From the sequence record PV764938.1: a stretch of 64,000 nucleotides of DNA. One strand, 5' to 3'. A program made the position numbers and the translations under genes. The notes under the pieces were generated by a model, which did no database searches, was not told the origin of the DNA, and saw only the letters and a list, made by a program, of their open reading frames with translations. Within the stretch, counting starts at the first letter, position 1. Each line of letters starts with the position of its first letter. This document shows, piece after piece, positions 18,601 to 45,159 of this stretch.

Positions 18601-21600
18601 TCCTGGTAACCGAAGTTTGCACGAGCGCGATCCTTCAGGTTGCTGTTTTCGATGGACTCGATGTCGAAGAGACGACGGAAGTCATCGGCGGCCTTTTCGA
18701 AGTTCACAGTCAGCTTGTTACCGGTTACGAGGAAGCCAGGGGCTTCAACGCGACCCTTCCAGAACTTTGTCTTGAATCCCTGCAAACGCAAACGATTCTG
18801 ACGAATGTTGAATAGTGGCGAGTAAACGATGTCACCGAAGATCGTCGTATTGTTGACGACGATTACATGCTCGATTTCACTTACGTGGAGACGGCAAGCA
18901 AACATTTCCTGACCACTGCGGGTCTGGATAACAACTGAACCTGCATCACGAACAACGTTTGTGTTGTAGGCCTTGATTGGGTTACCCAGCTTGTCCAGGA
19001 TCGAGTAAACGCCGTTGACGATCTGTTCGATTGGCTCAACATTGCCGTGATCGGTTACGAACTTGATCTCCGCACTGTTTGGCATCAACGAGATCATGTC
19101 GCCTTCTTTGACATCAGCATCTTGTGCCCATGCGAGGAAGTCCTTGAGGCTCAGTCTCCAGTCGTTAACCGTGGTATCATCAACGCTTACGGAATCAAAC
19201 TTCCAACCACGCGAAACCAAGTAACGCTCGTAGCCGCTGATGAATGTTGCCATTTCCTGTGGTGTACGGATAAGCGAACCAAACGGAATACGCTCGACGA
19301 TTGTGTCGTTCTTTGCGTCTCGGTAATACTCAACAGCCGCCGCATCCGCATAAGCTGGACGAGCAACTTCTAGCCAATACTGAGGCTCAAAGCTACGCAG
19401 GCTAGTATGGGTTTTGATCGCACGGTAGAACTTGTCCAAGTAGCGAACCGTTGTGTTCGTCGGATAGTAAGTGTTCTGCTTCCAGTTAGGAATGCGAACA
19501 CGCGAACCTGCACCTGCTGTAACAGAGATTGCACGACCACCAACATCGCTTGGGATGATCTTGAATACTGGATCCAGGATGTCATAGCCGAAGATCTTCC
19601 AACCATTTGTGGCCTTGCGAACAAGAATACCACCAAGGAATTCTTCACGGATGCTTGGGCTCTTGTAGAGCTCAACAGCGACATCTTCTGGTGGCAAACG
19701 ATCGATGTTATCGGAGACCACGTAAAGGGAATCAGACTGTGTGAAACCAGCAACCTTGTATGCGAGCTTCACATCGAGACCACGAATGAGCTTACCAAGG
19801 TTCTCAGCGATATCCTTGTTCTTGCTCTTCAGGTAATCGACAACCCACTGCTGAGTACCATGACGATAAGCAACGGTGCCATCGAACAGAAGTTCCGAAT
19901 GAACGTATTCGTCAGCATAAGGGAAACCAAAGCCCTGATTCGCAACGAGATCCAAATTGCGTTCGATGTTCCATGTTGTTTCAACGAAACGTGGTGGCTT
20001 CATCAAGTAGCAAGCCTGAGCCAACGCAAACGGATACCAGAAGCTCTGCTTCCATGCGGATTCAGCCGGAGCACCATCACCCCATACCCATTCGTCAGAG
20101 GCCTTAACCGTACGAGGCGGAGTGTTTGTGATCTTTGCCTGTAGCGGATCCAACAGGTTACCCTGATCATCAACTGGGAGCCAGTTCAACAAGTTCGGCT
20201 TTGCGAAACGCGCATGTGTTCCCGCGTTTGGACCTTCAGCGATCTTGCCGGCCTGAATATCGCGCCACATCAAAACGTTACCGGAACCGTACGGAGCTAC
20301 GCCATAACGGGTTTCCCACCAGGATGGCTGGTATTCAAATCCAAGCATTTCCCACGGATGGGTGTGCGGACGATCCGTGCCATAGTAGAAGTTGTAGATG
20401 CCTCTCCAGTGTCCTGGGAGTGGCTGATTGTCACGGTCAACGCAAGAACGCCAGTTCCATGTGAATGGATCGTTTGCGTTGTAGGTGTCGTTGACTCGGT
20501 AATCGATGCCGAAGTTTACGGCCCACTTCTCGAACATTGGACGCAGAATTGTGTTCATTTCTGCATTCGAATATTCGGCGGAGTAGAACTTGTTGGAAAC
20601 AAGCGACTTGTGGTCGAAGAAGCCTTCTTCGCGCTCACGAACGAACACTGGTGCGCTGTAGTAGATACGGCTTTCAAGTTCCAGAGTTACGGCATCACGA
20701 ATGTCCGTGAAGGAACCATCTGGGTTGATTGTACCGTAGCAGGGGAACGAGCTACCATCGTGACCGATGATGAAGTCCTTGTTGAGCTCCTGGTCCTTAT
20801 ACGTGGACGGAACTTGGATCGGGTAGATGCCCAAGAAGCTCGGTGTCGGTGGGATGAATGTCGGAGCGGATGAACCCTCACGAGCAGCCATCTGGGAATA
20901 GTAGAACGGGAAGTCCTGCGTAAAGCCCTTCGCGATTTCTTCAAGTGCGAAATCAACCCATGCAGCCGGAGTTGCAGAGTTTCCGAGTCTGTTGGAGATC
21001 ATGAATTCTTTAATCTTCTGGTCAAACTTACCACGGAAGCGAGCGTACTCGTCCTGCGCATAAGCCGCAGACTTCACGAAGTCGATGTCTTTGTTGGAGT
21101 TCAACAGCATCGTACGAAGCAGCGGTGCAGTATGCGAAACAATGAATGTACCCTTGGACAGATCCTTCGGGATATCCTTCCAGTTATTGCTAGAGTATTC
21201 GAGACCTTCAAAGCCTTCTTGCGAACGAATCACACCAATGAATTGCTCGAAGAGATCACCACGGGTTGCGTAGGTGATTTGGTCCCACTTCGGGTTTGCT
21301 TCGAGGTTCAGAGGAATCTCATACTGACCCGTAGAGCTCAACGGCTTGTTTGCGGGGTTGAACGTTGCAACATCAACGCGGTCGCCATCCTCCAGATCTA
21401 CAAGGAGAACCTGGTTGTTACGACGAATGTAATCGACGCCCTGCTTCAGCTCAACATTGTTGCGCTTGACCTTGAGGTTCTGTGCGATTGGCTCAACTGG
21501 TTCCTGGCTTGCTGTGAACAAACGGTGACCGTTTGCTGCGACAAACTTGTCAACAACCATCTGGCGGCTCTGTTCAGCCACTGCATACCAATCGTTCGTC

Positions 21601-23363
21601 AAAATCTGCTTAGAACCGCTGCCGATCTTGTAAAAACGTTGTTCGGGCAGATCATAGGAATCAACACCGATACGGTAAGAACCCGTGTAGGTCGCCAAGT
21701 AGTTCTCGAATACGATCTCACCCTTGGAGTCATAAACTAGACGGATTCCGAGAACCGTATCCGTGACCGAGCTCAATGTGGAGTCTTCACGATAACCGAA
21801 GAGTCGGCAGCCCTGGAAGTTGCTGTTTGGATAGATACCAACGTCGTCGAATGCAACACCGTTTGCATCATACAAGTAGAACAGCGGGAACTGGTTAGCT
21901 GTGAGCTTGCGCTGAGCTGTCTGCCAGATTTCACCGTTCCAGTGCATGTTCATGCCACCCAACGATGTGCCGAAGAGAACGTCAACGGATTCACCAATCG
22001 TCGGAGCACCCGAAACATCAGCACCATCAGCAACGAGAGTTGCCTTCATCTTGCCGTTTGTTGGGTTGAAGCTTACACGATAAACGCGGTTTGTGATTCG
22101 AGAGTCATCGTCGTTGATGACAAGAACACGAATAACATCGTCGTCACCATTAGCGGAGATCCATTCGCGATTCAGGATTGTGCCGTCGATGCGCTTGGTC
22201 GAATTGACTTGTCCGTTGATTGCCGTGAGGAAATCGTTGACACTGTGGGAAACCAGATGAACAGCCTTAAGCTTGCTCGAACCGAAGTTGAACAGCTGAA
22301 TGTTGCGAACGAACTCGATAATCGGACGCTTTGCCTGTGCGTTCTTGAGGCTTTCCTTTGAGAAGTTCAGCACCAAGCTCTTGTGGAACCAACGGTTGCC
22401 AGTGGACCATGGGTTGCCATCAGAAGCGCCACGCTGAATGACGATGTGATCCTTCTTGAGACCCAAATCCGGAGCATCATCAGGAACCAATACGATTTCT
22501 TCACCAACACCTTCAACGATGAAGATCTTACCGAGGAGTGCCTGTTCCTTGTCGTTCTTAACGACGATTCGCAGATTCGACTCAAGCTTCACATCGTTCT
22601 CGAACGCAAATGTAGACTGACCGATGATATCCTGCAGAGAGGAAACCGCTGTGAAGACCTTAACGATTGTGTCCTTCGCAGGAGGCGGAGTCAGTGTTAC
22701 CTGCTTCGTGTTTGCATTGTAGGCGAACGGAACCTCGATACCATCGACGGTTACCGAGACTTGCGCCGCAAGCACAGGCGCCGGGTAGTTTGTGGTCAGA
22801 TTGAAGACGCGAACTGCGCCATCACCCACATACTTGGCAGCATGACCGCGAACCTCAACAGGAGTCGGGCCCTCAGGGATCCAGAAGTATTCACGGAAGT
22901 TCAAAAACTTATCGAGGTCAACACTTGGGCACCAGCTGAAGTAGTTCTGGGAGAACAAGCGGTGATGGTTGTTGACGAGACCACCTTGGAAACGAATGTT
23001 GTTGATGAGGTCTTCGTAGAAGAGCAACGCATTGTTATCGCCGTTCGAATCGATGGAGACCATGCTTGGTTCCAGCTGATAGAACGCACGTTCCTTGGTT
23101 TCTTCTTCCAAGTAATAGTTGGTATCTTCTTCCGAGTAACTGACTGGGCGGCCGATATAACCGTTCAGTGGCTTGCTCTGACCAGGTTCAAACAGGTGAT
23201 CCGCAGAAGCCGCGAAGAACTTCTGCAGAGTTTCCGTTTGGTTTACACCTGGGAGCAAGTTGACCACGTGGCGCTTATCAAAGTTTACTTTGTCCACGTT
23301 GGCGCCAGAGAAACGATACGAAGCGTTTAGTTGCTTACGATTATCGGGCAGCTTGTCTACCAT
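9696..23363 (-). CDS. Giant baseplate wedge protein (gp7-like), 4555 aa
   Basis: Uninterrupted 13.7-kb ORF directly after the gp6-like gene; many (N/G)xGxGY..APxV repeats like those in gp7 of T4-like marine phages. Confidence 0.75.
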   Translation of the reverse strand: MVDKLPDNRKQLNASYRFSGANVDKVNFDKRHVVNLLPGVNQTETLQKFFAASADHLFEPGQSKPLNGYIGRPVSYSEEDTNYYLEEETKERAFYQLEPSMVSIDSNGDNNALLFYEDLINNIRFQGGLVNNHHRLFSQNYFSWCPSVDLDKFLNFREYFWIPEGPTPVEVRGHAAKYVGDGAVRVFNLTTNYPAPVLAAQVSVTVDGIEVPFAYNANTKQVTLTPPPAKDTIVKVFTAVSSLQDIIGQSTFAFENDVKLESNLRIVVKNDKEQALLGKIFIVEGVGEEIVLVPDDAPDLGLKKDHIVIQRGASDGNPWSTGNRWFHKSLVLNFSKESLKNAQAKRPIIEFVRNIQLFNFGSSKLKAVHLVSHSVNDFLTAINGQVNSTKRIDGTILNREWISANGDDDVIRVLVINDDDSRITNRVYRVSFNPTNGKMKATLVADGADVSGAPTIGESVDVLFGTSLGGMNMHWNGEIWQTAQRKLTANQFPLFYLYDANGVAFDDVGIYPNSNFQGCRLFGYREDSTLSSVTDTVLGIRLVYDSKGEIVFENYLATYTGSYRIGVDSYDLPEQRFYKIGSGSKQILTNDWYAVAEQSRQMVVDKFVAANGHRLFTASQEPVEPIAQNLKVKRNNVELKQGVDYIRRNNQVLLVDLEDGDRVDVATFNPANKPLSSTGQYEIPLNLEANPKWDQITYATRGDLFEQFIGVIRSQEGFEGLEYSSNNWKDIPKDLSKGTFIVSHTAPLLRTMLLNSNKDIDFVKSAAYAQDEYARFRGKFDQKIKEFMISNRLGNSATPAAWVDFALEEIAKGFTQDFPFYYSQMAAREGSSAPTFIPPTPSFLGIYPIQVPSTYKDQELNKDFIIGHDGSSFPCYGTINPDGSFTDIRDAVTLELESRIYYSAPVFVREREEGFFDHKSLVSNKFYSAEYSNAEMNTILRPMFEKWAVNFGIDYRVNDTYNANDPFTWNWRSCVDRDNQPLPGHWRGIYNFYYGTDRPHTHPWEMLGFEYQPSWWETRYGVAPYGSGNVLMWRDIQAGKIAEGPNAGTHARFAKPNLLNWLPVDDQGNLLDPLQAKITNTPPRTVKASDEWVWGDGAPAESAWKQSFWYPFALAQACYLMKPPRFVETTWNIERNLDLVANQGFGFPYADEYVHSELLFDGTVAYRHGTQQWVVDYLKSKNKDIAENLGKLIRGLDVKLAYKVAGFTQSDSLYVVSDNIDRLPPEDVAVELYKSPSIREEFLGGILVRKATNGWKIFGYDILDPVFKIIPSDVGGRAISVTAGAGSRVRIPNWKQNTYYPTNTTVRYLDKFYRAIKTHTSLRSFEPQYWLEVARPAYADAAAVEYYRDAKNDTIVERIPFGSLIRTPQEMATFISGYERYLVSRGWKFDSVSVDDTTVNDWRLSLKDFLAWAQDADVKEGDMISLMPNSAEIKFVTDHGNVEPIEQIVNGVYSILDKLGNPIKAYNTNVVRDAGSVVIQTRSGQEMFACRLHVSEIEHVIVVNNTTIFGDIVYSPLFNIRQNRLRLQGFKTKFWKGRVEAPGFLVTGNKLTVNFEKAADDFRRLFDIESIENSNLKDRARANFGYQEKEYLSNLLMTPTNQFEFHQGVIQQKGTISAMRKLFRSKFVRHNDGLNVLEEWGFRIGEYGASEIRPSMDFLIKQGDFKNSPQMFQFNGSGQGGWDLRLAWDADHWDYLKNVETVRATYSINGIKKVKMTNVGAGYLEAPAVNVIGDTSGASLKAILNWKNSGIAELKVLKGGTGFFEGDVVEIDGTGFGAAARVTGVNFDSSKILSVYVIPQEGTTGAGSGYAVGQEIRFAGGNGNAKAVISEVTETGAITKLTLTSPGAGYEGVGDILFPNFNFTAAGRIGVKVSGGRATVITVSNPGSGYDPATSVRFTGTGTGAIVQVTVTGGSISGVEVLNRGGGFETAPQIEFVGGNPTTPATASVTLQDPPTNGIVELAKFKRVEGIILKSFTIKVLDEFNGVQPQLTIGDVDDNARYVGPVNLATRSSKTVILDDGQQISNAALEVAAYITNAQDSGNLEITFTFEFTPNYYTGLFVATEDDKATKIYDLFNNETGEFMHKDPRWVWRHSTQNPDWPLIDVKAKQKGNLPSAGYVHLDDVQWTATTMNNFNALYRRIQREEPSSAITNTVTIKYAESSTAPRKINIVPNLSQGMYRIKNFVVDIVEAFPLTQAGEAEVIVSIGTIAEPEKFMEKTSVQTDKLQTYTHQVFEYLTSKLNDENALYVFVTQATGLAIAPGQMTVTANLELVGEIVLPGDRTWVYDTGYGDWNVFRFGDTSANVNMTRPQSFSTQGTVVSTNVNMFDALGIDHNPQEPRPEIVSLNPTFETDIEQAEARMEKTILDGILPDNNTTEMLLNTYKAKFKNSAKIFIDASQTLRNNGNSLVQIPIMDLWADSGIVINKITASVVRPFTYPAGNNPTITIGTLTETDRFIGAVNSSTAFRSVKPAPGRPTFSYSSPITVNVYDDTIVLNEDDTAATVRLVRNGNVFVTPSAITVTNPGWGYAATSEPKITVLGPTGVKAKANIVGTIIGYAVTNPGTGYTSAPTITVIGGGGTGAKGTAVLDGEKLDAVVIPGAGTGTSATANLNAGGVGGISDLQGGSGWEMRPFVTFEGGNPTSHAAVKAEISNGVVTAVLIDYNGAGYASAPEVKFHAYTGDGYLTEPRVVVSGGGGQGATVEPIMLWTVRSITITDWGKCSWVGGESTITVETPNGGAPAQAILESTPETLEPTVMAQWRHRVIEPATAENVNEWVYESTPIEFPAPTGTNSPDFYVQSVQLPISSVDERTTYEVEFPEYVLDTTTGEPTTTKNVTNGVIGTSTRSLVTVHNTVAGSRDIDLKVAGTRTPFYLNERINSDNKMVAFYNSDGVSDGLLTLVVDYHYTSGFELFDADDNPVRTSITGSGGDIFAWNSVRFDNNEGPEDPLLIPVDDWKLGDRILLDDGRSTLERAVEWTAGERYEYHELITRDGVVYRAIQTGSGLEASIVPQDNDIKSLDRPVITDKGTLYTHEPTVTITGDGEDAAAYVMLAPTSVYKIKVMNPEANIGYTGTEKLLITPKNLSGKGAEARISKVENGAITEVIVLDAGWGYDAAPIVTVVNDASDTPVVFECVMKPARIKAIVMTNRGTNYTTATMSFTTHGVTTDAFVAQEWEVASEAVTGWRVLERMDSIDGAIWQEIRQETPKIDTHMVESAVIYDVNTSETLQTLQLYDPFKGFIPGSAKREISYILEYDPAIYSNGPLAKSINSNERLWDSAKVGDIWWDISTTRYLDYEIGETEYKWKNWGKLAPGITIDIYEWTRSTVAPAFWSAEVEKKRNVSVDSDEHKPTGTVKDINTNASWVERTEYNKELSRNETVYYFWVRNSATVPFREDRNLTAMQIATIIQDPTSADIPWFAIVDTNKVLVGGAKQYVNDYSTSLKIEWKKSANDGLVHKQYKLLRENDERNNIDESLWIKMRDSLVGWDNNTQRKTFVGSLTTELNSLSTSFTVDDATGFDPSGEVKIGDYWIQYEYLNGNTFVGLTGVGTLRFGVGSKVYQTRTVEAFRKVPDQWLNERERYGALSRPGQTWFKSDVDQYGFLIPGREARKAFVDTMNEIFASEAFLDTRYEWREIFESEEPQPDANSYAFEVVDEFERDQLSATGVVKAGQKVFMQGTPETNGLWTLWIYLPSDARASETGYVLFKAQRYRMREGEMWKAVDWYDPEWSINDFPVKRYATRQERDADKKLDTTLLRGTLVQVDTQGPTDPRWAWYVYKDGSWIQVAKEKATIRLNDNFYAKNMMVYGFNDYKVGSSKKRDGSWELQYLLTELRTKLLTSLERNKLFFSMVKTAVSQHNYTDWVFKTSFLYMAGYNEQLNQSPIVFKDQIDNILSYINDVKPYHVKVRDFVRRLSPPMEHMNLTITDFDKPLYYDETTQSWRKLDVKVPADELVLRTDPQMRHWYENYQKTNYTLENWDDKWNPVRRPQITMLFDRVSCSPIVGWSPPEVPWDGNEQRWVHGAYTKTFGELEDLYRIPGQEYQQLVVDSTTLRDQLVRDSQNAVNAGGQALINRGDIVNVKVGPDRDPAAYMWSGTEFVEFYNVRWDMNINGGLADRIERYYEPSATMKRKELDTLIRGCDFRGTVVDGADLGQGLWDMFAWDYQTGWANEYEYYVGRDLNINPNQSNWEDSNSVEDIRLEGGELVQPWFDGGHPDELVRLRVRDPLMMTVYRQATSQGDMPTTQPTAFRFFKDSIGAWEGVFLEEDGIALSAPLMPADQTMSVAIPGLFPLHDPANPNLAELQAKVALSIGVSFTDNNGNPKTLTVGDLKAKRPNNVSYEFKVDPAFSLSVGDLLKKSPNGKDLVLANASEIDTLAIGQVVSITSNEVEDNIRTIKFKYKPIGYVVEEQRILGIYRSLGIDALWQQPHPTEPGYTVAIADNVDITEALKARINDILSRYVDGVVWVGTERITYTGVVDNGDGTFTLTGLGRGTGGTSRMIDAPINTKVFDGSVLHALLTFNTTNMRAHSTMDFSKNWKTWWSAANVGKPGPTV

Positions 23364-26960: not shown

Positions 26961-27355
26961 TAGCCGTTCATCCCTTCTCGAGTTCTCTTGTCGAACTCTA
27001 CGCTGAAATTCTCATATACGCCCCAAGGCTCAAAATAGAGGGTGAAGCTGATTACTAGACCTTGCTCCACCTCTTGAACATTTAGCGTTTCAATGCGAAC
27101 GCGACTGTCGGAATTGACTACGCGACGTGCTTCTTCAACGATAAGTTCGATGTTTGACTCTGTTAGCGGCTCAAATAGTAGGTCCCAAATCATGCAACCA
27201 TACGTGGGCATCATTACGCGCTCGCCGCGACTCGTATGGAAGTGATTAAGAATATCGCGCTTTACGAGATCCAAATCGTACAATGTCCAATTGCGAGTGG
27301 CCACATTGTTACCATTTGGAATGGTCGAAAAGCCCTTAAATAGATGGCGCGCCAT
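26960..27355 (-). CDS. gp25: Baseplate wedge gp25-like
   Basis: DLVKRDILNHFHTSRGERVMMPTYGCMIWDLLFEPL..DSRV, the GPW/gp25 signature. Confidence 0.92.
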   Translation of the reverse strand: MARHLFKGFSTIPNGNNVATRNWTLYDLDLVKRDILNHFHTSRGERVMMPTYGCMIWDLLFEPLTESNIELIVEEARRVVNSDSRVRIETLNVQEVEQGLVISFTLYFEPWGVYENFSVEFDKRTREGMNG

Positions 27356-27375
27356 AAAGTGTCTCCTATTTTACA

Positions 27376-27381
27376 TATTTA
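27376..27381 (-). promoter_or_regulatory. Late promoter (TAAATA)
   Basis: AATAAATA upstream of the gp25 RBS (AGGAG). Confidence 0.65.
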
Positions 27382-27422
27382 TTGGTGCATAAAATGCCCT
27401 GTTAACTATAAGGCTCAAAACG

Positions 27423-27680
27423 ATGAAAACAGATAAGGTACTTGATGAATTTAAGTCAAAGCGTGAGGTCATTCACGTCTCGGAATTCACTGATGAAATG
27501 CTTGAAGAAATAATGAATGCCGAGTGGGGCAAAGTCTCGGAAACGGGAACGCGAAAGCTCAGTGATGTGAAAATTGCTGATGCCCTTAACACACTTGATG
27601 TTGATCCCAAGAACACAGTCGGAACAGTTATCGAACCCGACAAGGAAATCGAATGGAAAGACGTTAAGGAAAAAGGTTGA
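27423..27680 (+). CDS. Hypothetical protein
   Basis: 85-aa acidic/basic ORF preceding the exonuclease. Confidence 0.6.
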   Translation: MKTDKVLDEFKSKREVIHVSEFTDEMLEEIMNAEWGKVSETGTRKLSDVKIADALNTLDVDPKNTVGTVIEPDKEIEWKDVKEKG

Positions 27681-27683
27681 TTT

Positions 27684-28331
27684 GTGGATACAGAAACATA
27701 TAACAGGCTACTAATGGTACAAAAGAAACAAAAACAAGAACTCTATGTAAGTACGGATATTGAAGCAAACGGTCGGGTCCCAGGACTCTCTTCCATGCTT
27801 AGCTTTGCAAGCGCAGTATTCGACATTGACAAAAATCTCCTCGGAACATTTTCGCGCAATTTGGAATTGCTACCGGGCTCCAATCCGCATCCGGAAACAG
27901 ATGCATTTTGGAATGAATCCGAAGCAAACAAAGCCGCATACTTGGTAACCCGTGTTGACATGGTAAGCCCAGCCGATGCAATGCGTGATTACGTCGCATT
28001 CCTCAAGGATCTCCCAGGTACTCCAATTTTCGTTGGTTATCCTGCGGCTTTCGATTTCAAGTGGATCGACTATTACGCTCATGCGTTTGTCGGCGATAAT
28101 CCCTTCGGTTTCTCCCGTTGCATTGACGTTAAGTCCTATGCTTACGCGGTCCTGAAGAAGGAAAAGTTCTCCCACACTGCAAAGCGCAACATGCCAAAGA
28201 ATTGGTTCGACAATCTCCCGCACACTCACATCGCACTAGACGATGCAATTGAGCAGGGCGCAATGTGGATCAATTTGCTCCGAGAAACTACTGGTCTGCC
28301 GCGTCTTGCGGATTTGACGTTGGCTGCATAA
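27684..28331 (+). CDS. DEDDh 3'-5' exonuclease (Rv2179c/RNase T-like)
   Basis: STDIEANG (ExoI), AAFDF (ExoII), HIALDDA (ExoIII). Start may instead be the ATG at 27714. Confidence 0.85.
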   Translation: MDTETYNRLLMVQKKQKQELYVSTDIEANGRVPGLSSMLSFASAVFDIDKNLLGTFSRNLELLPGSNPHPETDAFWNESEANKAAYLVTRVDMVSPADAMRDYVAFLKDLPGTPIFVGYPAAFDFKWIDYYAHAFVGDNPFGFSRCIDVKSYAYAVLKKEKFSHTAKRNMPKNWFDNLPHTHIALDDAIEQGAMWINLLRETTGLPRLADLTLAA

Positions 28332-28340
28332 ATCGTGCAT

Positions 28341-28369
28341 AAAAACGATGGGCCCGTTTAGGGCCCATC
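28341..28369. terminator. Terminator between convergent genes
   Basis: GATGGGCCC-GTTTA-GGGCCCATC, 9-bp stem, with an A5 run on the left (U-tail on the minus strand). Confidence 0.8.
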
Positions 28370-28372
28370 CTC

Positions 28373-28576
28373 TTATCCAAAATACCCACCAACTACTATA
28401 TCATCCTCATTGATGCTTGGGAAGTACCGGCGTTCATCCCGGAAGAACACTGCACTCACTGTTTCCTTTGGCTTCACCACGTAAACTCCAAACTTGGACA
28501 TTTCGTGAGCAAAAACTCCGATTGTGAGCTTCCTTTTGAGAAGCTCATCAACCTGTGCCTGCTTTAGACTCTTCAT
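28373..28576 (-). CDS. Small hypothetical protein
   Basis: 67 aa, GGAG RBS, directly after the spike gene. Confidence 0.65.
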   Translation of the reverse strand: MKSLKQAQVDELLKRKLTIGVFAHEMSKFGVYVVKPKETVSAVFFRDERRYFPSINEDDIVVGGYFG

Positions 28577-28586
28577 GCGTATCTCC

Positions 28587-31500
28587 TTAAACTGGAACGT
28601 AACGAGCGGTTACACTTCCGGATTCACTCGCTGCATTCAAGCCAATCAAACCACCATTTGCGTCCAACACTGGTCCACCCGCCATACCAGGCTTCAAACC
28701 ATTGACGTCATTTGTCGCCATACCGTTTAGACCATAAACTGTCAGACCACCGGCTGGAGTTCCAGGACCCGTATACTTGACCGTCTTGTTGTTCTCACCC
28801 GTTGGATTCGCAGGCATCGAAATCAAAGTTTCTCCAAATGCGTAACCGTAGCTCTGCATTGGAACACCGTCCGATTGTAGGCCTGCCATGTTGATTGGTA
28901 CCAAGTCAGCGTAATCGTAATTGCGGATTCTGATATGTGCGATGTCCTTGGATGGGTTCATCGCAATCAGCTCTGCAATTCGCATACGACCACCAATTTC
29001 CACATAAACGATTTGTCCGATTGTGGCAGTGTCGATACCAATGACCTGTGCGTTTGTCATCAGCGTTCCTGAGAAGTTAATGACTACGCCAGTACCCACG
29101 TTGTTACCGGAGATGACTTTACCGATACTCAAACGACCCGAAGGCGGCACCGGAACGATTGTTCCGTTTTCTTCACCCTCTTCTAGCTCGGATGGCTTGT
29201 TTGGATTCTTGATTTGATCCAAAAGCTGTTCAAGCTGCTTTAGAGGTGTCTTCGGTGTCTTTCCATCCACTGTTTTTCCGTTGGTTGTCGGGAACGTTGG
29301 GAATATCTCAGCAAGGTTGTCGATGAGGTCTTCCTTCGATTGTTTTCCTTCACGCCACTTTTCGATGCCGGCCTTGACTAGCAAATAGTTGGCAATCTTG
29401 TCCTGCAGGCTTGCTGTGAATTTCTGAGTACCCGAAAGTCCCAAAGCATCACGCGCTTCCTGTAGATCAGGCTGGCTGATATTATAGCGACCAACACCAG
29501 TTTCACCACTTGGGTTAGACGGCGAAGCCTTCATTTGTTCCTGTAGCTGATCGATTTGATCCAACGTCATATTGGTCAGGTTCTTATCGCCACCACTGTT
29601 GGCTCCCTTACCAGCTGTTTCGTTGTAACCGTCACCGGCATCAGTTCCTTCGCTTTGTGCGACCTTGTCAAGGAGCGGGTTGTTTGCGGAATTGTTTCCG
29701 TTGGTTGTGTTAGGATTACCGGAGCCAGAGCCTCCACCCGAACCACCACCTGATCCGCCAGAACCTCCTCCTGATCCACCACCAGCGCCGCCAGAACCAC
29801 CACCGGCTCCGCCGCCTCCGCCACCAGATCCACCTCCACCTCCGCCAGAGCCGGAACCACCTCCGCCCCCACCAGATCCACCGCCGGATCCTCCACCAGA
29901 TCCACCGCCACCTCCTCCGGAACCACCGCCTCCAGATCCGCCAGAGCCTCCGCCCCCGCCTCCTCCAGATCCGCCGCCTCCGCCACCAGAACCGCCGCCA
30001 GATCCCCCTCCGGATCCACCACCGCCTCCACCACCTGAGCCTCCGCCGGCACCGCCGCCTCCGCCTCCACCGGAACCACCACCAGCGCCACCAGATCCTC
30101 CGCCACCGCCTCCGGCTCCTCCACCAGAGCCCGAGCCAGAACCGGAACCACCGCCTCCGCCGCCTCCGCCGCCTCCGCCGCCTCCGCCGCCTCCGCCGCC
30201 TCCGCCACCACCTCCTCCTCCGGAGGAGTTGTCGTCGTCGTCATCGGTTGGATCGTCAACGTTATCTTCAGGCGGCGTTTCTTCGTCGTCCTTCGGAGAG
30301 CCATCGCTATTTGTGTCTTCGTCTTCTTCACCGCCACCAGAGCAATCGGCAGCTTCATACTCTTCATCACCACAAACGAATTCGTGACCCTTAAATGGCT
30401 CATGTGTTGGCAAACGAGTTACAACAGAATCACGAGTAGTTTCAGGATAGCACTCGGTTAGTTCACGGTCCGGAAGTACGCAAGGATCCTTAATCTCTGC
30501 TTCTGCTGGAGGTTCTGGTTCATTTGGAGTATCCGAGCAATTCTGCATGATCTTTTCGGACTTCATCAGGATCAATTGACCCGAAGTCATCGTAAAGACC
30601 TTGTCGGAATTCACTGTTAGGTTACCACCGACTTGAAGAGAATCCGCACCCTCGATAAGAACAGAACGGTTCTTCTTGATTGTGCTGTGATATGCACCAC
30701 CAATGTCCAACTTGTGGTCCTTATTGGTGATTTGATCCCAGTTGCCAGCGGTTCCCCACTTGGTGTCACCTTCTACGAACGCATTGAAGTTACCACCGAC
30801 ATGCAAATTGAAATCTTTGTCCGAGTGCATGTTGATGCCATTCGCAGCGTGAACGTTGAATGTTTTAGCCGTATACATGTCGATGGCATCATCTGAGATT
30901 TGCACCCAGGAGTTGCCCTTCTTGGTGTTCATGTAGATGTAACCGCAAGTCTCGTGAATGAGAACCTGCACGCCACTCTTGGTACGGAAACGGATGAATT
31001 CATTTTCCTGATTATCGTCCGCATAAATTTGCGAACCGTCAGGAGTTAGGAAACCATAGACGTGACTCGGTGACTCACGACGTGCGCCAGCAGTTGTGGT
31101 ACCGCGCTGAGTGTCCGTGTAAAGTCCCTGCATTGTGAGACCTTCATGAAGAGGATCATAACGGGGACGAGTCGGATCCAAGTTGTTTCCGATTTCAGAG
31201 AATTTGTTGTATTCGCCGACTGGCGGTTCTTCTGCACCACACGAAGCTTCGTCAAAGGATTCACTAACAGGAATACCAGGAACCATGTGGTTCATGTATT
31301 GCTTATACATGGAACCAACCCAGATACCCTTGTTGGGGTCACCGTTGATGAACATGACGATGACTTCGTTATCGATATCCGGCGGAACAGCCCACCAACC
31401 ATAGGAGACTTGGGATTCCGTGTACTTTTTGCCGTCCTTGATGTTACCCTTCTTCCACAGGTTGTCCTGGTTGTTCGGGTATTCTTTGATCGGTGTAGCA

Positions 31501-31722: not shown

Positions 31723-33705
31723 TTACTTTCCGCTTTGGTTCTTCGTTATTTGCATTGCTGGAATGCGAACCCCAGTGAGAACCTGTGTGAATGCACCACC
31801 GTTGAATTTGTGTGATACTTGATTGGTTGCATAGTATCCCGAATATGTATCGGTTAGCGTTAGGATAGGATTTCCATCGTCATCAATACCTTGGGGCAAA
31901 AAGAACTTCAGCATGAACATGTGTTCGCCATTGGAGAAGTTTGCCTTATCGTCGGTGCTATCCTGTTCAATGGATTCCGTATTTGTTGCTCCGAGCCAAT
32001 AAGGATCGCCTCGAATTCCTAGATCAACATGTCCGAGGTTTTCACCCAAATCACCATACAGCTGGTTGAGAATACCCGCGTAAATGCTTCGGCTACGCAG
32101 GTTGCTTGCTTCAATAGCTTGGTTAACGTGAGCGCGTGGATCATTACCATCTTGGATAAAGGTCATTGGCAAAGCCGATGGTCCATAACCCATTGTATCG
32201 ATGGATCCGTTGGAGGGTTTATTCAAACCCTCCCAAAGGTCGCCTACACTGGTTGGTGCACCACCAACGGCCGGTGCCTTACAATAGTTGATTGGCTCAA
32301 TTGCATTCTGGTAAATGGGCCATTTCTCGTTCATCGTCTGCTTGTTGAAATCGTCAGGCGAATATTGGATACCCGGACTAGAGTTTTCCGTTGTGATGTG
32401 ACCCTGCATGATGTTGGTGGCGATTGCGAAGTTGAAATTCAGGGAAATGTTGAAATCCAATACTTCTGTGTTCCGACCCGTAAACAGGTATTGATACTCT
32501 TTTTTCAAATAGTTTTGACTTGTCACAAATGCCAGTTTTGCTTGACCCTGTGCAATAGCGTCGTCTGCACCCTTTGCGGAGTTCACTGCTCGCACGTTGT
32601 CGTGACCACGAACATAGAACGTAATCTTGCGAACATAATCCTGAGAAATGGTATCATAGCTTACATTTTCGACCACAGTATCAACACGGTGAGCCGTTGA
32701 GTATTCCTTGGCTTCACTATCGTTTTCCGTTGCAGATTCTGCGGGGTTGATCATTTGTGTCGCAGTTTCCGAAACACTCATAATGTAATCGACGAGGCGA
32801 CCAATATCAGTACCACGGCTAATCTGTGTAACACCTTGGTTACGAGACGAATCCAAGAACTTTTGGTCTCGAATGACTTTGTGTTCAAATGGACTGTTTA
32901 CGACACCACCGTTCTTATAGGGCAAATCTTTGATTTCAACTATAAACGGTGCAGTACCACCATTGGCAACGTTGTAGGATTTCTCCAGAGCTTTGTTGAT
33001 CTGCTTGGCGACACCATCCATGATTTCTTTGACTTTACCTTCGCCTTTGGTAAAGTCGATATTGATGGGCATCTTAATCAGGTTGAACTGGTCGAAGTTT
33101 CCGATCTCGTTATAGCCGACGGCTTCGATCACATGTTTGCCACCGGTCGCATCTAGATCAGTTGTAAGTTTGGTGATGAACAAGCTCCAAATCCATGTCT
33201 TATCCACAGGTTTCTTTGGGGCGCCAGACTCTGGATCATAACCCAAAAAGTCAACACTCAAATAATACGGACACTTCATGAAATTTTTGACGTTAGCTGC
33301 GGCAGCACCGGCGGCCATTTTGTCAGGCAAAGCCATACCCAAGGGTTCAGAAATCTTGATAGTGAACTTGGTTGCGCCAATGTTCTTGGTTCTAAAATTC
33401 GGAGCAATGATTGCGTCGATTTCAACATCAGTAATGTTGAACGTCGTGAGTCCAGTTTCGGCAATGACGACAACGGGAGTCGTCGATGTGCCAGTATCCG
33501 TGCCAATATAGAATTTGAAATGGTAGCTCGGTTGCTCCACGTCGCCCATCGGATTGGCAACAACCGTGCTGATGTCTACTTTCGTAGCCTTAGCCTCGAT
33601 GCCTTTGAAACCCATATTCGCGTTTGGGCTGCCACCGGTTGGACTCACATATCCGTTGAACTGGGCATCGTTGCGTTGACTAGCTGGAACTCGTTGATCT
33701 GCCAT
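31723..33705 (-). CDS. Baseplate hub protein (gp27/gp44-like)
   Basis: 660 aa between gp53 and gp5; C-terminal IRGDPYW..GYYATNQVSHKFNGGAFTQVL motif typical of hub proteins. Confidence 0.7.
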   Translation of the reverse strand: MADQRVPASQRNDAQFNGYVSPTGGSPNANMGFKGIEAKATKVDISTVVANPMGDVEQPSYHFKFYIGTDTGTSTTPVVVIAETGLTTFNITDVEIDAIIAPNFRTKNIGATKFTIKISEPLGMALPDKMAAGAAAANVKNFMKCPYYLSVDFLGYDPESGAPKKPVDKTWIWSLFITKLTTDLDATGGKHVIEAVGYNEIGNFDQFNLIKMPINIDFTKGEGKVKEIMDGVAKQINKALEKSYNVANGGTAPFIVEIKDLPYKNGGVVNSPFEHKVIRDQKFLDSSRNQGVTQISRGTDIGRLVDYIMSVSETATQMINPAESATENDSEAKEYSTAHRVDTVVENVSYDTISQDYVRKITFYVRGHDNVRAVNSAKGADDAIAQGQAKLAFVTSQNYLKKEYQYLFTGRNTEVLDFNISLNFNFAIATNIMQGHITTENSSPGIQYSPDDFNKQTMNEKWPIYQNAIEPINYCKAPAVGGAPTSVGDLWEGLNKPSNGSIDTMGYGPSALPMTFIQDGNDPRAHVNQAIEASNLRSRSIYAGILNQLYGDLGENLGHVDLGIRGDPYWLGATNTESIEQDSTDDKANFSNGEHMFMLKFFLPQGIDDDGNPILTLTDTYSGYYATNQVSHKFNGGAFTQVLTGVRIPAMQITKNQSGK

Positions 33706-34025
33706 TACTTTGTCGCCTGAATGTTGCTGAGCAAACGTTCCTTTGTTGGAACACGGATTTGCAAACCTGCCTTGAAATCATAGATGGGATCGCGAATCAC
33801 ACCTAGGTTCAATACCTGGAATACCCACCAATAATCCTTTGTCCCATATAGTTCATAGCTCAGGTTGTAAGGACGGAAGTTGTACTTGGTCGGGATCACC
33901 ATAGCTTTGTCCGTGGGATCCGGTAGAATGTTTTTGAGTACCAAGTTATCGAGGTACCAAGAAGCTTGTGGCGTTGCCGAGTAAGGCGAACCATTTGAAT
34001 AACGTACGACTGACATTAGAGCCAT
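33705..34025 (-). CDS. gp53: Baseplate wedge gp53-like (LysM-like)
   Basis: RPYNLSYELYGTKDYWWVF..N..RDPIYDFKAG..IRVP. Confidence 0.85.
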   Translation of the reverse strand: MALMSVVRYSNGSPYSATPQASWYLDNLVLKNILPDPTDKAMVIPTKYNFRPYNLSYELYGTKDYWWVFQVLNLGVIRDPIYDFKAGLQIRVPTKERLLSNIQATK

Positions 34026-35449
34026 CCCTTCTGTTGCATGAGTTCGCCGCTTGCAAAGCTATCCCAGTTGAAGCTACGAGCCTTCGCTGGCGTTTGTTGT
34101 ACCGTTACAAGCACACTAAGCGTTGTGACTGTCGGGACCTTAGAGACGCCGCCCGCGCTGCTTACGGTTACATAGTCCACATTATCCGGAAGCTGCACTT
34201 CGTAGTTCTTGACTATCACTGACAGCCCGTTGAACATGTGTGTACCATAGCCGTCCAAAAACACCTGCGGTGGTGGAAGACCCTTGTTGGAGTCATTTTC
34301 ACCAAAGTGCATCTTCGTGAGTACGCGCAGGAAGTGAATACTTGCGAGCAGGTACTTTGCTTCGGTTTCGTTTTGCGCGGTGAATGTCCCCTGGATCGTG
34401 ATATCGATGCTTGGGGTATTCTTGTAGATGTGATAATCCTGGTTCGCATGAGTTGTTTCAAGCGTTTGGTAGTTGGTGCTTGCTTGCATCGAAACAGTTG
34501 GCGTATATGGGAATACGAGACCACCCGTCTCAGTAAGTGGAGCCAAAACACCTGTAAGCATTCCACTACGAATCGATGGCTTCGGGCTCAACTTGATCCG
34601 CTGGTCCGCACTACTTGCGACGCTGGTTACGCCGACAGAAGTATCATATACGGTATTTCCCGAATATTGCGTGAAACCATAGCCGCTGGTGACCGAGTTA
34701 TCCATGAGACCTGTTCGGGTAATCGAACCGAAATCGTTACTCAAGGTGTTGCGGATAATATCGAAGTTGGAGTCGCTGCTTGACGAGATATCAGTATCCG
34801 ATGATACCACTTGGCCGCCGAAGTTCACATAGGTTCGTGATCCACCACTGAACAAACTGGAAGTGGCTGCTGATAGTTCAAATGCGTTATCGATTTCCGT
34901 TTGCAGTTCGCGGAGCAAGGATTCGTAATAGACTTCAGCGGCGAATGCTTCGTCATCTGCGTCCCAGATTTCCTGTTGCGTTGCATCGGGATCCGTGCGC
35001 AGGGAAACCGCATAGGCCGCCGTTTCAATTCGACGTTCGTTTGCGTTTGCGAGTTGGTTCTCGAAATTCAATGAGACCAGCGAGGTCTTCTCATTGGAGT
35101 TACGACGTGCGAGCTCTAGCTGATTCTGATACTCGCTTACATAGGCGTCAGCCGCTGCAATTGCAGCGATTAGCGCGTCTTTGGATTCCTCAGAAGCCGT
35201 CGGATTCTCACCAACAAAGCTGCGATAATTGTCGCGTGCGCTTTGTGCGGAGACCAAAGCTTCGTCGAGATTCTTGGGAGGACTATTAGAGGGAGGAGCC
35301 GCAGGAGTTTCCTCGAGAGCTGTAGAAGCTCCATCGATTGCGGCTTGGCGTGTTGAAAAGCCCGTTACAAGGCGACCATCAGCATACTGAATTGCCCAAT
35401 TGGCTTCAGTGATCTGAACAATTTCGTAGTTTGAATTATCCTGCGCCAT
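34016..35449 (-). CDS. Tail tube initiator (gp48/gp54-like) with helical N-terminal extension
   Basis: C-terminal LVFPYTPT..ITIQGTFTAQN..HFLR..PPPQVFLDGYG..VIVKNYEVQLPDNVDY, a tube-fold motif. Confidence 0.75.
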   Translation of the reverse strand: MAQDNSNYEIVQITEANWAIQYADGRLVTGFSTRQAAIDGASTALEETPAAPPSNSPPKNLDEALVSAQSARDNYRSFVGENPTASEESKDALIAAIAAADAYVSEYQNQLELARRNSNEKTSLVSLNFENQLANANERRIETAAYAVSLRTDPDATQQEIWDADDEAFAAEVYYESLLRELQTEIDNAFELSAATSSLFSGGSRTYVNFGGQVVSSDTDISSSSDSNFDIIRNTLSNDFGSITRTGLMDNSVTSGYGFTQYSGNTVYDTSVGVTSVASSADQRIKLSPKPSIRSGMLTGVLAPLTETGGLVFPYTPTVSMQASTNYQTLETTHANQDYHIYKNTPSIDITIQGTFTAQNETEAKYLLASIHFLRVLTKMHFGENDSNKGLPPPQVFLDGYGTHMFNGLSVIVKNYEVQLPDNVDYVTVSSAGGVSKVPTVTTLSVLVTVQQTPAKARSFNWDSFASGELMQQKGWL

Positions 35450-36193: not shown

Positions 36194-37042
36194 ATGGCTA
36201 AGGTCAATTTCCTATCCAATAAAGAACTACTGCATGAGATTCATCTCAGCAAAAATTCCTATTGCTACTACCTCGACAAAACATATTCCAGCTACGATGC
36301 AATCGTATTGGATCTTTCCGAAGTAACCGAACTCCTCATCGAAGATGCCCGCATCAAGCGTGCGAATTCACTGTTCCAGGCTGCCAAGCTTGCTTTGAAG
36401 AATCAAGGTTATAAAGCTCATCAGATTAAAGTCGATCCGGTTCCACTTGAAGATATTCCGGTTGACAGCATTGTAATTCGTGTCATGACTGCTGATCATA
36501 TTCCGCTGCTTCCTGAGGAAGAGCTGAAGCCAGCACAGAAGGCGAAGAAGGATGAGGAAACACGTGTCAAGACAAACTTCAACCCGTTCAAGCATTACCT
36601 GCTAAACTACGATGGCGATGTGAACACCGGCACCGTAGATATGTCGAAGGTAACCTTCCGAGAAGTGGGTCGCTCTCACTGGAAGAATGGTCTCGATAAC
36701 GGTTACTTCAGCATGGACCACGGCAACATTACGGATCGCCTGGCTCGCATGTATTTAAAGCTTGTCGATCGTTATTCGCAGAAGCCAAACTGGCGCGGAT
36801 ATTCCTACTTGGACGAAATGAAGAACCAATCGCTGCTTCAGCTGATTCAAGTGGGTCTCAAGTTTGACGAGCGTCGTTCGCAGAATCCGTTTGCCTACTA
36901 CACGACCACGATGACCAACTCGTTTACTGGTGTGTTCCACAAGGAAAAGCGCAACCAAAACATTCGCGACGATATCCTCATTATGCAGGGACAGACGCCA
37001 TCGAATACTCGTATGGTTGAACACGAGCTTTCACAGCGATAA
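36194..37042 (+). CDS. gp55: Late transcription sigma factor, gp55-like
   Basis: RYSQKPNWRGYSYLDEM..KFD..SQNPFAYYTT...NSF; upstream of gp47/gp46. Confidence 0.92.
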   Translation: MAKVNFLSNKELLHEIHLSKNSYCYYLDKTYSSYDAIVLDLSEVTELLIEDARIKRANSLFQAAKLALKNQGYKAHQIKVDPVPLEDIPVDSIVIRVMTADHIPLLPEEELKPAQKAKKDEETRVKTNFNPFKHYLLNYDGDVNTGTVDMSKVTFREVGRSHWKNGLDNGYFSMDHGNITDRLARMYLKLVDRYSQKPNWRGYSYLDEMKNQSLLQLIQVGLKFDERRSQNPFAYYTTTMTNSFTGVFHKEKRNQNIRDDILIMQGQTPSNTRMVEHELSQR

Positions 37043-43233: not shown

Positions 43234-43758
43234 TTATGCAACGCCCTTTGCTCCGAGTTCAATAAGTTTTTCCTTGTTGGCCAGCACAAAGCTCTCATAA
43301 TCGGTTACGATGTAAGCGCGATCATCAGTCTTCTGATAATGCACGTAGGACTTCAAAACGAATTTGTCCTTGAGCTTTTCGTCAAATGCAACCCAGGAAC
43401 CCTTGCGAGTAATCTTAAAAATTGTGAGGCTCAAATCACCGGGCTCCGCAGGTGTCTCGGTCTGATCGATCCAATCGTTGAGCTGTTTGCAGCAACCATC
43501 GATGATCTGATGGAACGCGATGTCCTTGTAGTTCTTGGCTTCCAGGTTCATCTTCGGGAGGTTCTCAGGCGCAATAATATCGCCCTTCACCATGCGCACC
43601 TGACCAGAGTCTAAGAGGACTTTTCGCTGGACGTTTTTGCCACCGACATAGGCGCCAGAGTTCGGGACACGCATCCAGTGGCCACCCAAGTGTTCACCCA
43701 AAAATTTGCAGATTGCGAGTTCCCAGCTATTGCCCTTCGCCTTTGCTTTGCTTGTCAT
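43234..43758 (-). CDS. Holliday junction resolvase (Hjc-like PD-(D/E)XK)
   Basis: KAKAKGNSWE..RVPNSGA..GDII..LEAKNY; TAAATA at 43793-43798 upstream. Confidence 0.85.
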   Translation of the reverse strand: MTSKAKAKGNSWELAICKFLGEHLGGHWMRVPNSGAYVGGKNVQRKVLLDSGQVRMVKGDIIAPENLPKMNLEAKNYKDIAFHQIIDGCCKQLNDWIDQTETPAEPGDLSLTIFKITRKGSWVAFDEKLKDKFVLKSYVHYQKTDDRAYIVTDYESFVLANKEKLIELGAKGVA

Positions 43759-43849
43759 ATTTTCGATTCCATAAATAGATTAAAGTTTTAGATATTTATG
43801 TACCGCTTTTATATTGCGTTGGATTCCTATTTTCTGTTATGTTCTGGTT

Positions 43850-44640
43850 GTTGCACAATTGCATCCAACAGGCTCCATAAGACTCTCCAGAGACCTCTCC
43901 CCATATACTCCAAATTGAATCCCCTCGAATGAGGGCTTGCCCGCAAATAAAACGCAAATAGGGGTGAACTCCCGGGCATTACCACTTAGGACTGATGGAG
44001 CGGTCCTATTTGTCGGCACTAGATGTCGACATTCTCCTGTTGCTGCGAAACGTACAATCATGCAACTTGAGAATGGGAATCTAAGCTTGTCCCCGAGGAA
44101 TGGGATCAGTTTAGTGAAACGGAGAGAAGCCGTTTGTGTCTAGTGCTATCATGACTAAGTGATAGCGAACCCATCTCGAAGCCGCTGGTATGAGCAAGGA
44201 GATGGGGTTAATTGTTGGAGTAACGAACCAACGACCGTCCTGATAAATTTTCAAATTCATTTGCTAATTTAGGAGCCGCGGGTAGTCGCAGTAATGCGCA
44301 GGGGATCAAGTCAGACCTAGCCCCCTTACACCCGTGCATGCCAGTCCATGTGCTTTATTTTGCCTTATTCCCCGCAACCGGGGGAGTCCGTACCTTGAAC
44401 AGAAAGGACCCAAAGGTCTTTAAGTAATCACTGCTTTAGGACTTCGTCCTAAAGAGGTGTCTGCGTTCACTTCGCTATTCGCTCTTTCACTTGACACCAG
44501 GGGATTGAACTAATTGGGGTTTGGGAAATTAAAAGCTTCGCTATTCCGCTAAAAGCTGTACCACTTATATGTGGGTCATGAGTTTACGAATGAACACGCA
44601 TATAAGTGGTACTGGTGTATATCCTCGGATATACCCATGC
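43850..44640 (+). ncRNA. Candidate large structured RNA (or replication origin)
   Basis: No credible ORF; more than a dozen stems read by eye; promoter-like elements upstream. Boundaries and strand are uncertain. Confidence 0.45.
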
Positions 44641-44708
44641 TTCAAAAGAATTTCCATAACCGTGAACACAAAAAATTCTACTTTAACAAATAAATGGAAT
44701 GTTCTGAC

Positions 44709-44737
44709 TTGATTCCATTGATGTTTTCTGTTATATA
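44709..44737 (+). promoter_or_regulatory. Sigma70-like promoter of RNase H
   Basis: TTGATT-17-TATATA. Confidence 0.55.
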
Positions 44738-44772
44738 AAAGAGAAAATAAAAACGACCTGGAGTTTCAATCC

Positions 44773-45159
44773 ATGAGCAAAATTCAAATATACTTCGACG
44801 GAGGTTGCAAACCAAACCCCGGTAACATGGAAATCTGTATCGTTATCGTAGGCGATGGTGCTCCTCAGCCCAAGACAGTATTCGATCTTGGTCATGGAAC
44901 CAACAATATTGCGGAATGGTCAGCACTGCTTTGGGCTGCTTCCACTGCAAAGGAACGCGGCTACAAAGACGTTGAGTTCCTCGGTGACAACATCACGGTT
45001 ATCAATCAGGCCGACAATAAATGGAAGATCAAAGAGCGTAGCTTCTTGCCGTTCAAGGAAGAGTTCATGCGTTTGAATCATGAGATCGGCGGCAAGCTGA
45101 CTCATACACCACGCGCAACTAATCGTGCTGGAACTTATTTGGAGTCTGGCATCGTTTAA
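44773..45159 (+). CDS. rnhA: Ribonuclease HI
   Basis: YFDGGCKPNPG, TNNIAEW, LGDN, NRA: the D-E-D catalytic motifs of RNase HI. Confidence 0.88.
   Translation: MSKIQIYFDGGCKPNPGNMEICIVIVGDGAPQPKTVFDLGHGTNNIAEWSALLWAASTAKERGYKDVEFLGDNITVINQADNKWKIKERSFLPFKEEFMRLNHEIGGKLTHTPRATNRAGTYLESGIV

Follow-up and report, generated by a model that had tools for sequence, protein, structure and literature searches.

What is encoded by a stretch of 1,014 bp that carries neither an annotation nor an appreciable open reading frame (ORF)? Such an ORF-free gap lies at 43759–44772 of a 64,000-nucleotide (nt) stretch of the genome of Sinorhizobium phage Phosso (PV764938.1, 469,473 bp, host S. meliloti). This stretch is hereafter called the window; window positions equal record positions minus 186,000, and the gap with its flanks matches the record at 100% identity. 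Phosso is a lytic jumbo phage that is cultivable and grows on a standard laboratory rhizobium. The gap is bordered by the last base (43758) of a minus-strand endonuclease ORF of 174 amino acids (aa) and by the ATG (44773) of the RNase HI gene. A sequence-only reading had singled it out as the sole large non-coding stretch of the window, and this is borne out by the GenBank annotation and the ORF list, as the other candidate, 27355–28587, holds annotated genes. The same reading had proposed a large non-coding RNA and/or a replication origin. The former proposal is strongly supported by conservation in 11 sequences of three clades, compensatory changes, G–U pairs specific to the plus strand, the lack of a conserved ORF, and a near-threshold match of the central part to the EGFOA RNA motif. 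The gap probably acts neither as DNA nor through a protein but through a structured non-coding RNA, encoded on the plus strand, that functions in its folded form, and this RNA is a new, extended variant of the EGFOA-type ornate phage RNAs.

The family behind this statement was assembled from relatives of the locus. A search with the neighbouring proteins yielded a 480-kb contig of the IMG/VR database with the same gap at 84% identity, in which the stems differ by paired changes and the loops are unchanged. The search also yielded four contigs of 0.42–0.47 Mb in which RNase HI is just 44–48% identical and a 1.15-kb ORF-free gap with local similarity occupies the same place. More members were found by pattern scans of IMG/VR and metagenomes using the best-conserved blocks. 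In total, the family comprises 11 distinct sequences, Phosso and 10 uncultured relatives, which fall into clade A (Phosso, L006, L106, and L102), clade B (L008, L009, L011, L012, L034, and L105), and clade C (L103 alone); L095 appears to be the same sequence as L106, and L080 equals L009 over the conserved core. Seven of the 11 members reside on contigs of 0.16–0.48 Mb and the remainder on short or partial contigs sharing neighbouring genes. The family has been seen only in contigs whose neighbouring genes match those of Phosso, several of them jumbo-sized. RNase HI lies directly downstream of the RNA in 10 members, the L103 locus ending before that point, while the upstream neighbour varies: clade A has the endonuclease there, and clades B and C have an unrelated 270-aa ORF.

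Conservation across the three clades includes invariant blocks of 9–17 nt. The part that can be aligned across all clades, about 44075–44400 (~325 nt), is termed the core, and two covariance models built on it, R1 and R2, each give a single match in every member locus; in Phosso, R1 detects no second copy across the other 405 kb. Among 50,697 cultured phage records, blastn with the gap and the distant-clade RNAs returned Phosso only. The RNA is lacking from three further contigs that bear RNase HI (L007, L010, and L013), and the syntenic loci of Atu_ph07, Salicola SCTP-2, and PA5oct gave neither an EGFOA-like nor an R1 match. The PA5oct gap upstream of the resolvase was considered as a counterpart and dropped; the published non-coding RNAs of PA5oct are located elsewhere. 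A protein-coding reading of the gap was rejected as well, as none of the Phosso frames within it is intact in close relatives, all being split or stopped there.

Comparison of these sequences establishes the fold. Over 43840–44700, the plus strand has a minimum free energy of −284 kcal/mol against −238 ± 5 for dinucleotide shuffles (z −9.2), which places it outside the shuffled range, and the minus strand gives z −6.0. The RNAalifold consensus of eight members holds 108 pairs, 42 of them with compensatory changes. On alignments made by the two covariance models, and hence themselves fitted to the model, R1 (44167–44346) has 99.2% of cells paired, compared with 87.0% in shuffles and 31–46% when the partner is slid, with a covariation score of 0.415 versus 0.164. 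The corresponding values for R2 (44075–44242) are 97.6%, 91.0%, and 34–56%, with a score of 0.354 versus 0.215. In both cases, 0 of 500 shuffles reach the observed score. Folding each sequence singly, with the pseudoknot strands kept unpaired, served as an independent check and recovered helices H3 and H8 in 11/11 members and the full architecture in 9/11; the deviations are a replaced junction helix H6 in L009 and L034 and an extended H3 in L105. One G–U pair is invariant in all 11 sequences and further wobble pairs occur, all of which would be C–A mismatches on the minus strand; moreover, the plus strand carries every EGFOA match, and we conclude that it is the RNA strand.

The stems named by the sequence-only reading are all present at the positions it assigned to them, and in the four close relatives 10 of its 11 stems show compensatory changes. 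Stems listed with such changes in clade A are TAGGAC/GTCCTA, GTTGC/GCAAC, AAACGG/CCGTTT, GCTATCA/TGATAGC, CCCATCTC/GAGATGGG, GTTGG/CCAAC, CGCA/TGCG, CTTTAGGAC/GTCCTAAAG, GGTGTC/GACACC, the 14–16-bp stem at 44558–44612, and GTATATC/GATATAC. The part that did not stand is the long-range stem GCACTAGA/TCTAGTGC, which is not conserved: by reading of the alignments it is broken in L006 and L102, and it is missing from the clade consensus structure. This pairing was rejected, the consensus showing a local hairpin (44013–18/44024–29) instead. The true long-range interaction, which the earlier reading had missed, is a pseudoknot of 44184–92 with 44337–45.

From the 5' end, the plus-strand architecture begins with a hairpin domain at 43900–44074 (hairpins at 43922–35, 43938–78, 43983–44012, 44013–29, and 44030–75), which shows compensatory changes within the Phosso clade and cannot be aligned with the distant clades. 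The universal core (44075–44400), present in all three clades according to the alignments and to R1 and R2, opens with helix H1 (CUAAGCU..GUCCC/GGGAU..AGUUUAG, 44081–93/44102–14), 100% paired in the 11 sequences with two pairs that change on both sides. It is followed by an invariant and apparently single-stranded CUAG (44140–44143) and by hairpin H2 (GCUAUCA-UGACUAAG-UGAUAGC, 44144–52/44159–67), which has four compensatory pairs in clade A and covaries across clades. H3 (CCCAUCUC/GAGAUGGG, 44170–77/44199–206), in which three to four pairs change on both sides and with which the single-sequence folds agree, carries the invariant loop AGCCGCUGGYRUGAGCA. Within this loop lies the 5' strand of the pseudoknot (GCUGGUAUG, 44184–44192), which forms 9 bp, 99% paired, with the covarying 3' strand (CAUGCCAGU, 44337–44345) just 3' of a three-way junction. 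Its two variable positions read, in different members, U–G/A–U, C–G/G–C, and U–A/G–C. As H3 covaries and the 9-bp pairing of its loop covaries too, the element is an H-type pseudoknot, and it encloses the EGFOA-like module.

Inside the pseudoknot, hairpin H4 with its conserved GUAACGA loop (44214–18/44228–32) is seen in the consensus, in clade A, and in single-sequence folds. The next segment, GACCGUCCUG (44233–44242), is invariant in 11/11 members and, when aligned to the EGFOA consensus, is the counterpart of ACCGUCcU. A variable hairpin, H5, lies between this segment and the three-way junction (44277–44336), which is built of H6 (CGCGGGU/ACCCGUG), H7 (UCGCA-GUAA-UGCG), and H8 (AGGGG/CCCCU). 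H6 (44277–83/44330–36) and H8 (44300–04/44322–26) are 100% paired with four pairs each that change on both sides, and H7 has four compensatory pairs in clade A. The conserved 17-nt loop of H8, AUCAAGUCAGACCUAGC (44305–44321; AU.A.G.CAGACCUAG invariant), is the signature loop of EGFOA. A partner for its invariant CCUAG was sought; the candidates, CUAG at 44140 and the 3' strand of H1, are either invariant or inconsistent between clades. A terminator-like hairpin (GUGCAUG/CAUGUGC followed by UUUAUUUUG, 44334–44361) excludes the pseudoknot and the end of H6, and the distant clades keep its U-run only. Hairpin H9 (AUUCCCC-GCAACCG-GGGGAGU, 44367–73/44381–87) is conserved in the two main clades. Finally, the 3' hairpins at 44434–44637 (44434–54, 44456–98, 44558–44612, and 44613–37) are clade-specific in sequence with compensatory changes within the Phosso clade, and in the relatives this stretch is replaced by a different sequence of similar length.

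Which known RNA, if any, does this architecture resemble? The EGFOA RNA motif is Rfam RF02955 (Weinberg et al. 2017, PMC5737381), and EGFOA RNAs have been seen by cryo-electron microscopy as oligomers and lie in unusually large gene-free locations (bioRxiv 10.64898/2026.07.01.735769). A permissive Rfam scan of the gap matches RF02955 on the plus strand at 44209–44338 with 29.0 bits (E 0.0056; gathering score 37.7), and the homologous site of five relatives scores 27.2, 35.1, 35.9, 36.1, and 37.5 bits, which means that the site was matched in 6/6 members scanned. Furthermore, the most conserved letters of the EGFOA model (ACCGUCcU and AGACCU.G) coincide with invariant letters of the Phosso-type RNAs. 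The likeness extends to a ACCGUCCU segment followed by a hairpin closed by AGG/AGA, predicted in most members, and to an outer helix that encloses a short hairpin and a hairpin whose conserved loop of ~17 nt contains AGACCU.G. It also includes the unusually long gene-free phage stretch, here of 1,014 bp. Additionally, the CAGACCUAG loop variant occurs in L128 as well, an EGFOA of 61.6 bits. The sequence-only reading had been unable to assign the gap to a known family. This holds at the level of Rfam gathering thresholds, at which the whole window has zero matches; it does not hold for the core, which is EGFOA-like in its scores of 27–37.5 bits, its invariant letters, and its loop.

Canonical EGFOAs encountered in this work score 57–69 bits (L108/L111 and L110) and 61.6 bits (L128). 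They came from a looser pattern applied to viral contigs, and a strict canonical pattern applied to genome contigs found nothing. These examples lie on phage contigs in ORF-free stretches of 0.8–0.9 kb, at least 220 nt downstream of strong promoters, with terminase, DNA polymerase, or a cluster of transfer RNA (tRNA) and transfer-messenger RNA (tmRNA)-like genes as neighbours. Compared with them, the Phosso-type RNAs lack the conserved 5' CCcAG (there is no CC.AG 8–14 nt upstream of ACCGUCCU) and have H4 with its GUAACGA loop in that place. Their module is enclosed by the 9-bp pseudoknot with an invariant upstream hairpin loop, within a core of ~325 nt and further domains, and model R1, which covers the whole domain, recognises only the H8 hairpin in canonical EGFOAs. 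On these comparisons, we conclude that the core is homologous to EGFOA, or at least of the same design, and that H3, the pseudoknot, H4, and the outer domains are family-specific.

Some features of the canonical EGFOAs are worth recording on their own. In L108 659–783, L110 8980–9094, and L128 5398–5503, the 5' CCcAG is complementary to the loop CUgGG, in the form CCUAG/CUAGG in L128; this pairing resembles a covarying pseudoknot, and the Rfam structure line does not include it. An upstream motif, GCCGUUAGAKGGU, is common to L110, L128, and L133. On the IMG/VR contigs of 52–74 kb (L128, L133, and L134), a tRNA, a tmRNA-like element, and an EGFOA are found within 450 nt at L128 5050–5503. In L134, a sub-threshold EGFOA-like element lies ~430 nt from a ROOL RNA (298 bits) and two tRNAs, on the opposite strand.

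GOLLD (RF02032) and ROOL (RF03087) are further ornate phage RNAs (bioRxiv 10.1101/2024.12.08.627333). The gap RNA resembles them in being phage-encoded, several hundred nt long, and rich in helices, pseudoknots, and conserved loops, with a conserved core and a less conserved part in a gene-free gap of about 1 kb. Moreover, Phosso itself carries a true GOLLD, and EGFOA-like elements adjoin ROOL in other phages. The gap RNA differs in that neither model matches within 43600–44900 even at E up to 10, and in that no tRNAs are adjacent; ARAGORN detected neither a tRNA nor a tmRNA. The Rfam scan does recover GOLLD at another Phosso locus (186.6 bits) and ROOL in L133 and L134 (300 bits). The Phosso GOLLD (RF02032, 186.6 bits versus a gathering score of 150) occupies record positions 33533–34001 (locus L115) with an embedded tRNA at 33598–33669. 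It lies in an unannotated gap of 1,047 bp (PV764938.1 33003–34050), with a sigma-70-like promoter upstream and a clean intrinsic terminator at ~34014–34033. With this GOLLD and the gap RNA, Phosso therefore has two large structured RNAs.

How would the gap RNA be made? A T4-type late-promoter-like motif, cATAAATAg, faces the RNA at 43771–43777 (plus strand) and would start transcription near 43784. A like motif is present on the RNA strand in 11/11 members, 410–493 nt upstream of the pseudoknot motif. In the window, ATAAATA occurs in 10 copies versus 3.6 expected, mostly 20–90 nt upstream of ORF starts, including those of the portal and a baseplate gene. Additionally, the ORF at 36194–37042, a hypothetical protein by annotation, matches phrog_12791 ('sigma factor for late transcription', 5e-90) and is a gp55-like late sigma factor. 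A TATAAATA-like element (cATAAATAg) upstream and a gp55-like sigma factor are what marks a T4-type late unit, and Phosso probably uses T4-type late promoters; the use of this particular promoter is putative. A second late-promoter-like motif at 43793–43799 (minus strand), invariant in clade A, faces the endonuclease gene and lies outside the RNA. The sequence-only reading had pointed to TAAATA at 43772 and to TTGCGT-18-TATGTT at 43814–43843 on the plus strand, and both exist; the latter is a sigma-70-like site that, by its consensus match, is a possible second promoter. It has the 11-mer TTTTCTGTTAT in common with a promoter-like site before RNase HI (TTGATT-17-TATATA, 44709–44737, plus strand), whose clade B equivalent in the same place is TTGACA-18-TAAATT. 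Just upstream of this site, three of the four clade A members have kept the element AATAAATGG at 44690–44700 (TATAAATGG in L006), which may either mark the 3' boundary of the RNA or serve RNase HI as a late promoter. In four RNA libraries, contigs of relatives span 44000–44430, their 3' part being an unrelated sequence of similar length; as evidence of transcription, these contigs are a weak hint.

Based on these features, transcription from the late promoter at 43771, perhaps also from the sigma-70-like site at 43814–43, would yield an RNA of roughly 0.5–0.9 kb whose level rises late in infection. If EGFOA, GOLLD, and ROOL are a guide, the invariant single-stranded segments and the pseudoknot would lock a compact tertiary fold, which may interact with itself or with a macromolecule of the host or the phage. 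Late expression, independent function in trans, and any self-assembly are putative. The fuller proposal is that of a previously undescribed ornate phage RNA class of ~0.5–0.9 kb, in which an EGFOA-type junction locked by a pseudoknot is combined with lineage-specific domains and which acts late as a self-assembling or macromolecule-binding particle; we regard it as evenly balanced.

Several points count against these interpretations. The EGFOA score stays under the Rfam threshold of 37.7 bits in every member scanned. Only 11 sequences in three clades are at hand, and many of the changes counted are inherited clade differences and not independent events. The RNA-library contigs are of low depth and come from runs chosen for holding the sequence, and one contig spans a neighbouring gene, so that carry-over of DNA is possible. 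The ends, abundance, and timing given above for the RNA are deduced from sequence features, and oligomerisation as well as any target are proposed purely by analogy. Furthermore, no clear terminator is common to all clades, which makes read-through into RNase HI possible.

The last point leads to the alternative that survives best, which we nevertheless consider unlikely: the structured region would be a long cis-acting 5' leader of the RNase HI messenger RNA, in which competition between the pseudoknot and the terminator-like hairpin (44334–44361) controls the read-through of late transcription from 43771. In favour of a leader, RNase HI follows the RNA directly in 10 of 11 members, that is, in all with that flank, the terminator-like hairpin and the 3' strand of the pseudoknot have positions in common, and there is no strong terminator common to all clades. 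However, both main clades have a promoter-like site of RNase HI downstream of the RNA and ahead of the ORF, and the distant clades do not retain the terminator hairpin. RNase HI homologues exist without the RNA in L007 and L013, and the EGFOA relatives adjoin unrelated genes (terminase, DNA polymerase, tRNAs, and ROOL). Moreover, 0.9 kb is unusually long for a leader.

Less probable still, and in our judgement improbable, is the second suggestion of the sequence-only reading, a replication origin primed from an R-loop, for which the flanking RNase H had been invoked. Here, the gap would be an origin at which the structured transcript forms a persistent R-loop and RNase HI makes the primer, in the manner of ColE1 RNA II or T4 oriF–oriG. 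As in those systems, a structured transcript stands beside an RNase H function; it adjoins a recombination endonuclease gene in addition to RNase HI, the linkage to RNase HI is conserved wherever checkable, transcription at the gap is divergent, and the cumulative GC skew has a local minimum near record position 230 kb. Over the whole genome, however, the cumulative skew tracks blocks of gene orientation, the local minimum being the end of a minus-strand structural block, and the global minimum is found at ~92 kb and not at the gap; GC skew was rejected as an origin signal after this whole-genome profile. The gap holds no iterons. It has just two short direct repeats of two copies each, one not conserved and one resembling a promoter spacer. 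The 11-nt repeat CTTCGCTATTC (44470 and 44536) noted in the sequence-only reading does exist, but it is not kept in L006 and was rejected as an iteron. Selection acts on RNA pairs including G–U, on multi-way junctions, and on the pseudoknot, none of which a primer needs, and the conservation pattern, without the features of an origin as known from those systems, is that of a tertiary-folded RNA. Additionally, the nearest relatives of the core, the EGFOAs, show no linkage to RNase H, and RNase HI is preceded by a promoter-like site of its own. Positive evidence for the origin proposal was found nowhere in these comparisons.

That the gap is non-functional, a decayed gene or a spacer with chance hairpins, would agree with its missing annotation and its sub-threshold sole database match, but this can practically be dismissed, being already contradicted by three-clade conservation with invariant blocks of 9–17 nt, by pairing of 98–99% kept by compensatory changes versus 31–56% when slid, by the fold z of −9.2, and by the lack of ORF remnants.

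A folded non-coding RNA of the EGFOA type thus remains the preferred explanation of the gap. To our knowledge, the ornate phage RNAs GOLLD, ROOL, and EGFOA combine striking structures with no known function, and they are known mostly from metagenomes or prophages. In the lytic jumbo phage studied here, a much larger conserved RNA is built around an EGFOA-like core. With a GOLLD and an EGFOA-like RNA in the same genome, Phosso offers one cultivable system in which the role of ornate RNAs is genetically testable. Moreover, what Rfam describes as the short EGFOA motif may in many cases be just the conserved centre of a longer transcript, since the canonical examples, too, lie at least 220 nt downstream of strong promoters in gaps of 0.8–0.9 kb.

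As for the neighbouring genes, the sequence-only reading had named a resolvase and an RNase H. The upstream gene (43234–43758, minus strand), a 'Holliday junction resolvase' in GenBank, encodes a PDDEXK_15/RusA-like endonuclease (Pfam PF24608, 1e-23; phrog_244). The downstream gene (44773–45159, plus strand), 'ribonuclease HI' in GenBank, is RNase H according to both Pfam and PHROGs.

Other parts of the Phosso genome may hold further RNAs. A 'Ro-like RNA binding protein' is encoded at PV764938.1 290301–291965 (L119), with unannotated gaps beside it, for example at 288243–288753. No Y RNA was detected at Rfam gathering thresholds, and a divergent Y-RNA partner may be present there. Similarly, a 1.3-kb unannotated gap at PV764938.1 446806–448103 (L122) comes after a tRNA with the annotation tRNA-Pyl(cta); the gap contains no Rfam match, and it may hold another RNA of a new kind. 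Among the protein-coding genes, window positions 9696–23363 are taken up by one minus-strand ORF of 4,555 aa, and two more giant minus-strand genes lie at record positions 48338–68978.

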